Source: Podarcis liolepis (taxonomy: Eukaryota). Taken from it: a stretch of 64,000 nt of DNA. The stretch is from NCBI GenBank assembly GCA_965112155.1, contig OZ218100.1; one strand, given 5' to 3'. The translations under genes were made by a program, and so were the position numbers. The notes under the pieces were generated by a model. It saw only the letters and a program-made list of their open reading frames with translations, was not told the origin of the DNA and did no database searches. Below are positions 2,150 to 40,285 of this stretch, in pieces; the stretch's first letter is position 1, and each line of letters starts with the position of its first letter.

Positions 2150-3746
2150 GGGGGCAGCTATAGTCATTCAAACTTAAAAAGGAATTGCAACCTTCACATC
2201 CTTGTGGAAAATATCTGTGTAGGTTTTAATGTTCACTACTCACCTGCTGAACTGCTGCCATTTCAAACAGGATTCTGGCCAATACGATTTATCACCTCAG
2301 CACAATTTCCTTTGGGAAATTTCCTTTGTGAATTTATTCATTTTTAAGTGTATGTACTGTTTTTCCTAAACAGGTTCACAAAGCTGCTGTGCTCACACTT
2401 TAAGAGCTGACAATATTTGGGAGGAATTTCTGGGTGCTCTACTGGAACAGCTACTGACATTCTTATAGCTAGGGATGCTTTGAAGATTGCAAATAATATG
2501 CTCCACAGATGAGATTTGCCTGATCTGCCTTCTACCCTAAATTGCCACAATCCGACTCCATAAATTGTTTGGTACGAAGTATCTTAAGTATAGGGAGTTT
2601 TGTTTCTAAACGTGCCACAGCACTAGCATCTCTCCTTTTATAGATCACAAGCAGCCTTGTACCCAATGTTGATCAGAAATTCTAAGAAACCAAAAAACTC
2701 CCGATAATTCAGCCTAGATAGATAGTTGATAAATAGAAGATAGACAGAAGTGACACATGGGTATTAACTGAAATGCACTGTCTCTACAAAGACAATTCAT
2801 GCTCTCTTAAAGCAGGAATATTGTGTTTGGTTACTATTTGGTCACCCTACTGGAAAAAGTTCAGTGACAGGAAGTGGGAGTTTCTTTTGTATTCTGTAAC
2901 CTTTTTCTTTCAACAGATTTCAAGAAGAACATGCTGGTAACATTAACTATATCCCATGTGACCTTTATGCCTATTACAGTATTTTTCATAAAGGACATGC
3001 CTTTTCCCTTTTTGGTTTATAAATCAATCCTTGAGTATAACTGCTATCTGAAAAATGTTAACAATTAAACAATAATTCAGAGATTTTGAATTTAAGTACC
3101 CTCTGTGTGAGCAGATTAAGAGAATATTGTCTACGTAATTCAGGAGAAAACCAATTAAGCCTGCTATATAATGAGCAATGATGCTCTCTCACATCTGCCA
3201 GCAAAACCAATCAACATAATCTATTACAGAGTGATGTGCTTTCTATTTTGTGTATTACAGGGATGATTCAGCACTATAAATTATATAACTATAATCAACA
3301 TTTGTTAATATGATAAAAAGGACACCGTTCTCCTTAGACCCAGAATCACACTGAATATGAGCCCAAAACAGGATCTTTAATTCCGAATTTATCAACTGCA
3401 CAGTTCAATTTGTTCTGCTTCAAAAGTCCAATGCTGACAAGATTCCAAAATGTAGGGACTGAGCACATCACGACTCCTCCAGCAGTGTAAGAATCAGGCC
3501 TGGGATGGAGAACTCTAGAAGGAGATAAGGAGGAATGGGGAGGTGAAACTTAAACAGATAGAAACCCTACCCACTGCCCTCACCAATCCCACCTGGCTCT
3601 AGTATAGAAATGGGACTTCACCTCTCCTGAGGGGGGCGGTGCAGAGCCTCAGTCTAGAGTGACTGAGCAGGATTCAGAGAGACAGATCAAGTGCTCTCTC
3701 CCAGGACCAGACACTGCCTCAGGAGAAGGGAACAGATGCCCCCACC

Positions 3747-3931
3747 CAGTGCTTTTAATAACATTTAATAAAAAATGTTTAGGGGTACTCTCATTTTGAC
3801 TCAAGAAAATCACCATTTCATAGTTCAAATCGAGAAAAATAAATACAGTAAATGGACAAAAGTACAAAGATTCACAAAATATTTGGGGGTATGCGTATGC
3901 CTGTGTCCCCCCCCCCAGAAGAGAAGCACTG
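3747..3931 (-). mobile_element. hAT-type MITE, same family as 68-203
   Basis: Ends CAGTGCTT.../...AAGCACTG; perfect 8-bp TSD CCCCCACC at 3739-3746 and 3932-3939; internal TGTTTAGGGGTACTCTCATTTT is the reverse complement of sequence in 68-203. Confidence 0.85.
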
Positions 3932-32270: not shown

Positions 32271-33132
32271 TATTAAAGTATTATGTGTTGTATACATGAG
32301 CACTATACTGTAATTCCTGCACCCAAAATGACTGATAAGTAGTCAAATAAGTAGTCTGAGGGTGGTTCTCTGTGTGTGTTGGGTGGGGGAGTTAAGTTGT
32401 GACTCGGAAGGGCAGAAGTTAAGGATTGCTGCTGGTCTAATGCTCAGAAACTAATTAAGCACCCTGCGGAAGCTATTAGGTGATGAAAGGCTCGGACTGA
32501 GCTCAGACATTGCCCCCATTACATTTGCCTTTAATTGCTTAGGCAGCAAGTTTTCAACTTGTGGGCTAGTTTTTAGAACAGAGCAAATGCCAAGCGGGGA
32601 TAATGAGGGATTTTCTGATACCTGATAACCACAACAGGAAGTTTTGCCCTGCTCACATCTGCAGCAACTCTTCTGCAAGAGCTGAAAAACATACAGAACA
32701 CTTTGTGTTCCTCCCCCCCCCCGCCCCCAGGGCTCAAAGAAGAAATGCAGCAAAGTATGCTTAGCTCCTCGCAGGACTGCCAAGATAATAATAGCAGCGT
32801 GGAGCCCTCGCCACACTGTTTTCGTGATATTTACAATGTGATATTCAGCAAACACAGCACTATGATTCAGAGTTTGAAAGGATATTCTAACCAAAGCGAG
32901 TGCTCAAAATAGGGATGACACTAGGGGAAAGGATTTGGTTATTTCAATAACTGTGTAGTTGCCAAGACAATTGATAGTTATAATATACGCCTTTCTAAAA
33001 AGAAATCCTCCTTGTGAACTCATATAAAGCCTTGTGCTTCCAAATTTCAAACAGAATCTCATACCTATTTATTGACTCCCTGCTTCCTCTGGTCTCTGGA
33101 ATTATTGCTCCCCCATCTCCCTATACTAGCAC

Positions 33133-33254
33133 TGGACAACCAGCTGCCCTCCAGATGTTTTGGACTACAACTCCTATCAGCCACACAAAGCACTGGTTAG
33201 GACTGGTGGGAGTTATAGTACAAAACATCTGGAGGACACCAGGTTGGCAAAGTC
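33133..33254. mobile_element. Old palindromic hAT-type MITE
   Basis: CCTCCAGATGTTTTGGACTACAACTCC...GGAGTTATAGTACAAAACATCTGGAGG inverted arms. Confidence 0.7.
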
Positions 33255-33274
33255 CTAGTCTGTATACCTTATTA

Positions 33275-33410
33275 CAGGCATCCCCAAACTTGGCCTTCCA
33301 GATGTTTTGGGACTACAACTCCCATCATCCCTAGCTAACAGGACCAGTGGTCAGGGATGATGGGAGTTGTAGTCCCAAAACATCTGGAGGGCCGTGTTTG
33401 GGGATGCCTG
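33275..33410. mobile_element. Palindromic hAT MITE (CAGGCATCCCCAAAC ends)
   Basis: Perfect 15-bp TIR; left TSD CCTTATTA at 33267-33274; right TSD reduced to CCTG by a 4-bp loss (see finding). Confidence 0.92.
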
Positions 33411-33659
33411 CCTGTCTGTCCTAGTCTGTATTACCTTATTGTTACCTTATTGTTTCCCGATATTTATTTCAGACTGTAAACCCCTTGCCAGGAGAGACCT
33501 GTCATACAAAGTGCACCAGGTTGGTGAATATTGGACAAGGGTAATGAGAAAGCAGCAATTCCAGAGGCAGCAGGAGAAGGAAAACAAGGAAACATAGGAA
33601 TGACATTGAGTTTGAAATTGGCAATCCTGTTCTTTGTAAAGTGTTGTGTACATAGATGC

Positions 33660-33660
<1 letters not shown>

Positions 33661-33705
<45 letters not shown>
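33661..33705. repeat. (ATT)n microsatellite
   Basis: Pure run; a second one lies at 34523-34568. Confidence 0.98.
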
Positions 33706-34521
33706 GCCGTAGAGCAACAACACAGGGTAGTGAGGATGCAATTATACTTCCTTTTCGTATTTCCAAGCCTTCCACTGTGCTTCTCATATGTTGCGAAACG
33801 CAACCGGATGAACTTTGCTATTCACAGACTCATTCTCCTGCAATCCATCTAACAGATCTTCAGAACCAGGAAGAGAAAGATGCAATGATCTCCATAGCTT
33901 TGGTTTGGATGAAAGTGACATGAAGCAATTTCTCTTTCAAAGGGCAAACAACATTCTGCTGAGTTTCTGTTAAAGGATGTACCTGTGATCCATTTTGTTG
34001 TGCTATGTGCAGGAGGAACACAACTTTTGTGATTGCTTGTTCGTTTAATGCACTGATCTATCCTACGTACCATGTAAAAATGGATGGATGACAGCCACAT
34101 CAAAGCACCTTAGAGAAGGCACAGTAGAAGTGTGTTGAGAAGGAAAGCTTCTTTATGACTCTGTATCTTTAATCCCATACTAACTTCCTTCTGTGGTAAA
34201 AGTTGCTTCCATGAATTTTTAGATGGCAGTGTAGAGTTTTGATAACTCTTTGTCCTTCATTATAGACCTATCAAATAACAAAACACAATGGATCATATTC
34301 AGTGTAGTTCTAAAATGAACATTCAGTGTAGTTCTAGAGTGAACAATGATTTTTCCTTCCTTGGCAGGATGTCCTTTCCCCCCTCTGTGCATCTGTTCTA
34401 TGTTAACCCTTAACCCTCTGGAGCAGATTTGTGGGTGGTGCATGCCAGGAAAGAGAGGGGGAATTCCCTTGTGCTAGCAAAAAAAGTTAGTTGAATACTT
34501 CTCAATGTTCCAATCCCAAGC

Positions 34522-34569
<48 letters not shown>

Positions 34570-37529: not shown

Positions 37530-37844
37530 TATTTATTCAGTGGTCTGTGTTTGCCTGAGCTTGAGTCTGGACTAAGGATTCTGAGCTCCTGTGTTCTAAT
37601 TCGATACATGATATCCAGTCACAGAACATTTCAGGATTTGGGCCTCTGCCATTGGCCCTTAAACTTTGAGTCATGATTCGCAGCTTGGAAGTTTAGACAG
37701 CCAGTCACTTTGGGAGTGGGAGTGGCCCAGGCCTTCAGAAATATATATAAGCAGTTGCTTTGCCCCTGTTGTCCAGTTCTGTTACTTCAATAAAGGCTCT
37801 TGCTGTTATCACTGTGTCGTGCCTTGTGGGAACCCACCTATACT
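37527..37844 (+). mobile_element. Solo LTR-like element
   Basis: Starts TGTTA, contains TATATAAG then AATAAA, ends ...CCTATACT; sits inside a (TCTG)n tract so the TSD is uninformative. Confidence 0.5.
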
Positions 37845-37928
37845 TCTGTCTCCGTCTCTGTCTCTGTATCTGTCTCCCTCTCCCTCCCTCTCTCGCTCTC
37901 CCTCTCTCTCTCTCTGCTGTCTCCACAC

Positions 37929-38139
37929 CAGGCATAGGCAAACTCGGCCCTCCAGATGTTTTGGGACTACAACTCCCATCATCCCTAGCTAACAGGACCA
38001 GTGGTCAGGGAAGATGGGAGTTGTAGTCCCAAAACTTCTGGAGGGCCGAGTTTGGGGATGCCTGCCTTATTGTCTGTCCTAGTCTGTATTACCTTATTGT
38101 TACCTTATTGTTTCCCGATATTTATTTTGCCTATGCCTG
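37929..38139. mobile_element. Chimeric hAT MITE carrying captured genomic flank
   Basis: Outer TIR CAGGCATAGGCAAA / TTTGCCTATGCCTG; TSD CTCCACAC / CTCTATAC (6/8); internal foreign TIR ending at 38064, then a copy of 33411-33469. Confidence 0.9.
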
Positions 38140-38457
38140 CTCTATACCATGCATTATTATGACCCCCCCTTCCCTCACCATTTTCTAAAAACAACAACTA
38201 AAAAGACCCTAATGTGGTAACCTTTCCTTATACAGATGCTGCTCCAGCCCCTTGATCATTTTGGTCTCTGGTTTCTGAACTTTTCCCAGCGCTACAGTAT
38301 CCTTTTTGAGGCTGATAAGCACATTCATCCAGCCACACTCTTCTCTGGTCCCTGCCTGATTCATGAATGTGATATGCCAAATGGCCCATGATCCGTCATG
38401 GCATCTAGCTCGACAAACACTTCATTTATTTACTCACCTCTCTAATCTATCCTCAGG

Positions 38458-40109: not shown

Positions 40110-40285
40110 CAATACAAATCTATGGTGCAGCCACATTTGGAATACTGTGTACAGTTCTGGTTGCCCCACTTCAAAAAGGATATTGTTGAGTTGGAAGTGG
40201 TTCAGAAAAGGGCCTCAGAAATGGTCAAGGGGGTGGAGCAACTCCCCCATAAGGAAAGGTCACAACATTGGCACCTTTTTAGTTG
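40110..40285 (+). mobile_element. CR1 ORF2 fragment
   Basis: YKSMVQPHLEYCVQFWLPHFKKDIVELEVVQKRASEMVKGVE is a typical CR1 post-RT motif. Confidence 0.92.

Follow-up and report, generated by a model that had tools for sequence, protein, structure and literature searches.

How a MITE can come to enclose DNA that belongs beside another copy of its family is the question raised by positions 37929-38139 of a 64,000-nucleotide stretch of Podarcis liolepis DNA (assembly GCA_965112155.1, contig OZ218100.1). This whole stretch, which is free of N, is referred to here as the window. Between its outer tips, the element carries a second right tip of another subtype followed by 63 nt that are also found next to a sister MITE. 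Our preferred answer, to which we give a probability of roughly 0.8, is that a one-off templated repair or template switch was anchored on the sister MITE and read out into the flank of that copy. The sister copy is called the donor and the composite the recipient. The features are as follows.

33128-33256, + strand: older MITE, diverged but related to the palindromic hAT group, a short way upstream of the donor; given for context only, with approximate ends
33267-33274, + strand: left 8-bp TSD of the donor, CCTTATTA, a 7/8 match to the first 8 nt of the cargo (38065-38072)
33275-33410, + strand: donor MITE, 136 bp, with 58-nt inverted arms (95% complementary), a 20-nt loop and the major tips CAGGCATCCCCAAAC and GTTTGGGGATGCCTG
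33411-33469, + strand: donor flank, the putative template; starts CC then TG where the copy has CCTTATTG, the donor being 4 bp shorter
37921-37928, + strand: left 8-bp TSD of the recipient, CTCCACAC, a 6/8 match to 38140-38147; resembles the nTCTAGAn preference of the family
37929-38054, + strand: the recipient's own left tip (minor subtype, CAGGCATAGGCAAAC) and body, with private substitutions at 38012 (A) and 38036 (T)
38055-38064, + strand: donor-type right-tip end, GGGATGCCTG, the first part of the putative copied tract; GGG>CCT is common here in family reads
38065-38127, + strand: cargo, 63 nt of low-copy non-MITE DNA from the right flank of the donor, starting with a copy of the donor right TSD, CCTTATTG
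38126-38139, + strand: right tip that belongs to the recipient but has been displaced, TTTGCCTATGCCTG, of the minor subtype; the end of the cargo overlaps with its T run (2-3 nt of microhomology)
38140-38147, + strand: right 8-bp TSD of the recipient, CTCTATAC, a 6/8 match to the left TSD

The shared stretch and its borders

We aligned the two loci and found that 33275-33469 and 37929-38127 share the 136-bp palindromic MITE and 57 identical flank bases, with a single 4-bp indel. The two MITEs have the same length (136 bp) and the same orientation and lie 4.65 kb apart. The 63 nt at 38065-38127 align with the 59 nt at 33411-33469 as CC, the 4-nt indel and then 57 of 57 identical positions (33413-33469 against 38071-38127). 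A 57-nt exact repeat in 64 kb cannot have arisen by chance. The homology stops at 33469/33470, where the donor locus reads CAGACTG… and the recipient locus continues as TGCCTATG…; the recipient sequence at the homology end is TGCCTATGCCTG, with CAGACTG as its counterpart. Self-BLAST of 32-40 kb against the whole 64-kb window returned no further homology between the two neighbourhoods, and the window holds no other copies of the cargo. A larger segmental duplication was ruled out, the self-BLAST homology being confined to 33275-33469 and 37929-38127.

The composite contains three tips. The left tip, CAGGCATAGGCAAAC, occupies 37929-37943 and has the reverse complement GTTTGCCTATGCCTG; the outer right tip, TTTTGCCTATGCCTG, occupies 38125-38139, and its last 14 nt, TTTGCCTATGCCTG (38126-38139), match the reverse complement of the copy's own left tip exactly. 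The inner right tip, which ends at 38064, is GTTTGGGGATGCCTG and is identical to the right tip of the donor. The first-pass annotation had described outer TIRs of one subtype with a TSD of their own, an inner right TIR of the other subtype, and about 63 bp matching the DNA to the right of the 33275-33410 MITE. The alignment recovered each of these features at the coordinates listed above.

The differences between the two copies are unevenly placed. The stretch 37929-38064 differs from the donor MITE by eight substitutions, made up of a CCC>AGG triplet in the left tip and five single substitutions in the body, all of them within the MITE. The copied flank contains no substitutions, and its sole difference is the 4-bp indel. 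Apart from that indel, 38050-38127 shows 0 differences in 74 nt vs 5 in the 106-nt body (Fisher P = 0.08). Substitutions and an indel between the copies had been offered as an argument against an assembly duplication. Both do exist, but the flank that was copied contributes none of the eight substitutions.

The net insert is 75 bp, with TTTG on both borders. On the right, a run of four T leaves three possible places for the junction and thus 2-3 nt of T microhomology; rejoining at a T microhomology, as first proposed, agrees with the alignment. The left junction falls within the shared GTTTG at 38050-38054 or further to the left, and the left edge of the putative copied tract can only be bounded, between 37939 and 38055. 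Within the body, A at 38012 and T at 38036 are private to the recipient: 94-97% of family reads differ at these positions, where the donor shows the family consensus. The T at 33395 is apparently a private change of the donor, as no variant row is listed at 38049. The most economical tract would start at 38050-38055, end at 38125-38127 and measure ~75 nt. Because the contrast between body and tract (P = 0.08) is suggestive at most, the tract could also have spanned nearly the whole MITE, with substitutions arising later.

Donor, recipient and target-site duplications

We compared the flanks of both MITEs to establish which locus supplied the shared segment. The outer flanks of the recipient, CTCCACAC and CTCTATAC, match at 6 of 8 positions (P ~0.004 by chance). 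The inner alternative, CTCCACAC against CCTTATTG, matches at 2 of 8. This suggests that the element with the outer tips was inserted first and that the 75 bp were added later. At the recipient locus the segment splits a MITE tip, and the two halves, …GAGTTTG and CCTATGCCTG, would be contiguous in a normal minor-subtype copy. At the donor locus the same segment runs on into unique DNA, and its 8-bp TSD partner is found across the donor MITE: the left flank of the donor, CCTTATTA, matches the start of the copy, CCTTATTG, at 7 of 8 positions, vs 4 of 8 for the present right flank of the donor, CCTGTCTG. The motifs GTCCTAGTCTGTAT and CCTTATT also recur on both sides of the donor MITE. Because a TSD partner and shared motifs flank the donor MITE in this way, the segment can be regarded as native to the donor locus. 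As judged from the tips and flanks, the direction of copying is shown to run from the 33-kb locus to the 38-kb locus. The earlier claim that donor and direction are both readable was borne out by the continuity of the donor locus, the TSD partner, the split tip and the outer TSD.

The 4-bp difference in the flank lends itself to a similar argument. In the simplest reading, the donor would have lost 4 bp (TTAT) of its right TSD after copying, a polarity given by TSD logic alone. The first-pass annotation had stated that the copy preserves a TSD since lost by its donor. The better match of the copy (7/8 vs 4/8) stands, but CCTTATT is repeated locally at the donor site (33267, 33434 and 33445), and the loss itself is one that we infer. 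Since CCTTATTG is a locally repeated motif, the 7/8 match is weaker than its nominal P.

The same evidence bears on two other histories. In the first, two MITEs would have been inserted 63 bp apart at the recipient locus and the second truncated to its last 14 bp, so that the cargo would be native there and the 33-kb locus would be the copy. That Pack-type elements can form as hybrids of closely spaced neighbours is published, as PMC13317346 relates citing Catoni 2019, and the inner MITE is complete at 136 bp. However, this inner element would have mismatched tip subtypes and a TSD of 2/8, with 6/8 left to the outer flanks, and the segment at the 33-kb locus runs into unique DNA, bears the TSD partner of a MITE and shares motifs with the left flank. 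We regard this history as extremely unlikely.

In the second, end-bypass transduction, the donor MITE and its right flank would have been transposed to the 38-kb locus by way of a pseudo-end downstream. hAT elements hop locally, and P elements offer a documented case in which flanking DNA was captured through end bypass (Tsubota and Huong 1991, cited in PMC8277862). Against this, the left tip of the composite is of the other subtype (ATAGGC, not ATCCCC), private body substitutions occur in the composite and in the donor, and the outer tip TTTGCCTATGCCTG is absent downstream of the donor, where CAGACTG follows 33469. We give this history hardly any credence. Both the end-bypass model and the hybrid-of-neighbours model were ruled out on the tip subtypes, the TSD matches and the absence of an outer tip downstream of the donor.

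The older MITE at 33128-33256 lies 20 bp upstream of the donor. Complementarity between its arms, 33137-33180 and 33203-33246, is 84%, and its identity to the MITE core is 77%. Its tips resemble CAGGCTTCGCCAACCTGG, one of them resembling the CAGGCTTCGCCAACCTGGT-type ends of the loose-end consensus described below. A repeat of the last bases of this older MITE together with the flank next to them (GTCCTAGTCTGTAT) is found on the right side of the donor MITE, at 33418-33431.

A low-copy cargo in a high-copy MITE family

To characterize the family and the copy number of the cargo, two raw-read runs (~1x genome coverage) and two contig sets were mapped on 37650-38440 (791 letters). The MITE core attracted ~16,000 raw reads at ~1x, which places it at well over 10,000 copies, and the right tip attracted ~2,600-3,900. 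At 38055-38057, GGG>CCT was found in 26-33% of these ~2,600-3,900 tip reads, corresponding to the 'GCCTATGCCTG' subtype, and a further ~800-1,200 reads had loose ends running into …GGCCGAAGTTTGCCTATGCCT. From these two classes of reads it follows that both tip subtypes, CCCC (major) and AGGC (minor), co-exist and are abundant genome-wide; the outer tips of the recipient are of the minor subtype. Some reads combine the MITE core with SPIN-type tips (CAGCGGTTCTCAACCTGTGG). The sequence GGGACTACAACTCCCATCA is present in each MITE arm, at 37960-37985 and 38008-38033.

The family was found to have the features of hAT elements. Outside the tips, the loose ends share a (G/C)TCTAGAG consensus on both sides in four of four runs (…TCTAGAG followed by CAGGC, and GCCTG followed by GTCTAGAG), which points to TSDs of 8 bp and a preference for nTCTAGAn. 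Novick et al. 2011 (PMC3014272) tabulate the hAT criteria and the Charlie-like Anolis families with TSD patterns NTCTAGAN and NYYTARRN, and the loose-end consensus conforms to the nTCTAGAn / NYYTARRN target preference of these Charlie-like Anolis hATs. The TSDs are 8 bp in both copies, with matches of 6/8 at the recipient and 7/8 at the donor (CCTTATTA and CCTTATTG, the latter as kept in the recipient). In accordance with the YARNG terminal motif and short TIRs of hATs (PMC3014272), the termini of both copies are CAGGC and GCCTG. The arms of both copies are 58 nt long and 91-95% complementary. An autonomous element is absent from the 64-kb window.

Among Anolis elements, hAT-N1_AC (135 bp with 57-bp TIRs; PMC3014272) compares with the 136 bp and 58-nt arms found here, and the tip CAGGCATCCCCAAAC is identical at 13 of 15 positions to that of hAT-HT2_AC (tips of hAT-HT2_AC and hAT-N4_AC, CAGGGGTCCCCAAAC). 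The 8-bp TSD with a NTCTAGAN-type preference and the presence of thousands of copies are likewise shared with the Charlie-like Anolis hAT MITEs. Unlike those, the present family belongs to another lizard lineage and has two co-existing tip subtypes, and the likeness is judged on tips and architecture alone.

The cargo was found to behave very differently from the MITE. In both raw-read runs, depth dropped from ~16,000 over the MITE to 0 at 38082-38108, with unique flanks at ~1-2; at ~1x the raw reads are too thin for judging presence or absence in other organisms, and unique bins were also empty. In X15, the summed contig depth dropped ~50,000-fold, from ~2x10^7 on the MITE to ~420 on the cargo, with unique DNA at ~78. 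Thousands of reads go loose exactly at 38064, and the consensus beyond this point is random except for the TCTAGA target motif. Because the read depth collapses and the loose ends share no continuation, the 63-bp segment is outside the dispersed family and the cargo is low-copy. The X15 depth of ~420 is ~5 times that of unique DNA and above the ~200 estimated for two loci, and a few further partial copies of the cargo are possible.

These data address the explanation that the 63 bp are part of a longer dispersed element or MITE variant, of which both loci would be copies with no local copying between them. The surroundings are repeat-rich, with ~500x raw depth at 37650-37838 and low-copy repeats in the right flank, and the summed X15 cargo depth is ~5 times the unique depth. 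In contrast, a dispersed variant does not agree with zero raw depth at 38082-38108 in two runs where the MITE reaches ~16,000, with the thousands of reads that go loose at 38064 without a common continuation, with the lack of further copies in the 64-kb window, or with a segment at the donor locus that has no bounding tip on its right side. We consider this explanation very unlikely. Membership of the segment in a dispersed MITE consensus had been named as the result that would overturn the proposal of local copying, and the proposal survives this comparison with reads (depth 0 on 38082-38108 vs ~16,000 on the MITE).

The composite itself is also represented in short reads. An exact 130-nt X15 contig with a depth of 92.9 (unique ~78) equals 38098-38227 and spans the cargo, the outer tip and the unique flank. 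Its start leaves 30 nt of the shared segment, and in our reading this is the point at which branching of a k=31 graph is expected for a cargo present at two loci. X15 matches the window letters exactly and possibly comes from the source individual, so this junction contig is not independent of the assembled individual. The contig supports the right junction; the left junction, including TTAT, lies outside the listed contig. In X15, another contig (112 nt, depth 61.8, 7 differences) aligns from the outer tip at 38126 onwards, preceded by 11 unaligned letters that do not belong to the cargo, and an X13 contig from another species (304 nt) also starts at 38126, with 6 unaligned non-cargo letters before it. 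These contigs may represent the cargo-less junction in a paralogue, an allele or an orthologue.

An assembly artefact, in which a chimeric or mis-polished consensus mixes reads of two MITE loci, was weighed on the same material. A high-copy palindromic repeat is present at both loci and is a classic place for assembly and polishing errors, and X15 is perhaps not independent of the assembly. Nevertheless, the exact short-read contig spans the junction at a depth close to that of unique DNA (92.9 vs 78), the copies differ by the 4-bp indel and eight MITE substitutions, and clean microhomology junctions with a matching TSD are not expected of polishing errors. An artefact is thus highly improbable.

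Several other repeats were observed around the two loci. The region 37650-37838, to the left of the recipient MITE, is a dispersed repeat with a raw-read depth of ~400-560 at ~1x in two runs; 85-95% of the reads differ from the window at many positions, which marks it as a member, older or diverged, of a family of intermediate copy number. A low-copy repeat lies in the right flank of the recipient (38195-38309 against 40171-40285, inverted, 76%, 2 kb downstream), and the raw-read depth is 10-25x at 38271-38324. Identical 48-nt GCC(ATT)15 stretches are found at 33658-33705 and 34520-34567, 862 bp apart, and could reflect a local duplication or one element present in two copies, whose tails they would be.

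Probable route of capture and comparison with known cases

The reading that we prefer, templated copying from the sister MITE, can be laid out as a series of steps. A minor-subtype 136-bp palindromic hAT MITE with an 8-bp TSD would already have been present at 37929, as the outer tips and TSD suggest, and its uninterrupted right end would have read …GAGTTTGCCTATGCCTG followed by CTCTATAC. This right tip would later have been interrupted ~10-14 bp inside the element end by a break, a fork stalled at the hairpin or an excision gap. The 3' end on the left side would then have paired with the sister MITE, which lies 4.65 kb upstream in the same orientation and is 95% identical, and would have been extended across the sister tip (GGGATGCCTG), its TSD and 55 nt more of unique host DNA. 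Finally, the new strand would have left the template and rejoined the recipient tip at 2-3 nt of T microhomology, for a net result of +75 bp with no recipient sequence lost.

The products agree with templated repair. A template close by has the same sequence as the inserted tract, which begins and ends in homology or microhomology: its left border falls in the shared GTTTG, preceded by ~120 nt of 95% homology, and its right border in the run of 2-3 T. The event is non-reciprocal, with the donor MITE and flank intact except for the 4-bp difference, which looks secondary. The breakpoint is 10-14 bp inside the element end, away from the site of transposase cleavage. The donor MITE is a near-perfect palindrome (58-nt arms, 95% complementary, with a 20-nt loop), and the hairpin fold of the MITE reaches -64 kcal/mol (z = -12.7). 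Such a hairpin is a plausible fragile site, and given its high stability a fork-associated or structure-induced lesion is plausible.

The first-pass annotation had named synthesis-dependent strand annealing (SDSA) on the sister copy, with run-through into host DNA. The templated copying is supported, but SDSA is one of several pathways that would do equally well. The same product is compatible with SDSA, with excision-gap repair in several invasion cycles, with a FoSTeS/MMBIR-type switch and with a polymerase-theta-type templated insertion. Both the lesion and the pathway that followed (gap filling of the SDSA type vs a replicative template switch, whose products are alike) are therefore matters that we infer.

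Ac/Ds elements undergo abortive gap repair that leaves filler DNA, in which repair synthesis from the broken or excised transposon uses ectopic templates and ends at microhomology. The recipient resembles the Ac/Ds and P-element cases in that a homologous template was copied, that a template in cis was preferred, that synthesis ran into non-homologous DNA and that the ends were resolved at microhomology. Those cases are induced or transposase-dependent, whereas the lesion here, 10-14 bp inside the end, shows no sign of a transposase break. For P elements, gap repair from ectopic templates was described by Gloor et al. 1991, as cited in PMC8277862.

The closest comparison is with the animal Pack-TIRs of Tan et al. 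2021 (Nat Commun, PMC8277862). These authors reported 370 animal Pack-TIRs, with hAT as the commonest superfamily (208/370), and attributed single-copy Pack-TIRs to transposition-independent gap filling. In their set, 57% were within 15 kb of the parent, most of those <5 kb away; microhomology was found in 68%, with a median of 2 bp, and the TE gap was tiny. They required a filler >100 bp and discarded parents with a TE within the flanking 100 bp, as a guard against segmental duplications.

The composite resembles these elements in many respects: a copy of nearby non-TE DNA interrupts a TIR element, the parent is in cis at <5 kb, the breakpoint has microhomology, the TE gap is tiny with no recipient sequence lost, and the element, apparently single-copy, is a hAT. 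TIR parts of at least 10 bp of the consensus terminals are present on both sides (the whole MITE on the left and an 11-14 nt tip on the right). For the parental copy, where an identity of at least 90% and a length ratio of 80-120% are called for, the values are 59 vs 63 nt and 57/57 identical within the window, with genome-wide uniqueness judged by read depth only. Unlike the Pack-TIRs of Tan et al., the filler contains 63 bp of host DNA (75 bp for the whole insert), short of the >100 bp cut-off, and the parent adjoins a sister TE, the 33275-33410 MITE, so that their pipeline would discard it. One junction consists of ~120 bp of 95% homology with the sister MITE, not of microhomology, and the filler therefore starts inside a TE and carries the tip and TSD of that TE. 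The breakpoint also lies in the terminal 10% of the element, where theirs skew to the interior. The composite is thus an element that works like a single-copy Pack-TIR, though the pipeline of Tan et al. would miss it.

The hybrid model for Pack-CACTA elements, in the form in which PMC13317346 reports it from Catoni et al. 2019, also involves two neighbouring copies of a family and host DNA between TE ends. The pair in the window departs from the model as given there: 4.65 kb separates the two neighbours, which are both still intact; the host DNA derives from the flank of the other copy and not from the interval between them; and the TSD pattern contradicts a hybrid origin.

The composite had further been called the first step of Pack-type capture. 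This holds for its structure, which is TIR-bounded with host cargo, but goes no further, as there is no sign of transposition. By its sequence the composite is probably best described as a single-locus element with no sign of later mobilisation or of a function. It is a clear single-locus example of the already published gap-filling capture by cut-and-paste transposons. This process is known in animals and shown experimentally for P elements, and one 63-bp non-coding capture has little consequence by itself. What distinguishes the locus is that donor, recipient, direction, both junctions and the earlier state of the donor flank are legible in one 5-kb stretch. It illustrates that homology between TE copies can bring unique host DNA into a TIR-bounded unit, a step required before Pack-type mobilisation. 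The example would gain in value if donors next to a TE turned out, in a genome-wide count, to be common yet filtered out by existing pipelines. We regard it as rather doubtful, and put it forward only tentatively, that read-through anchored on a sister copy is a recurrent capture route for the abundant hAT MITEs of this lizard. If it were, Pack-TIR surveys would systematically miss the class, since TE-adjacent parents are discarded, and its signature would be an internal TE end with a donor TSD beside the cargo.
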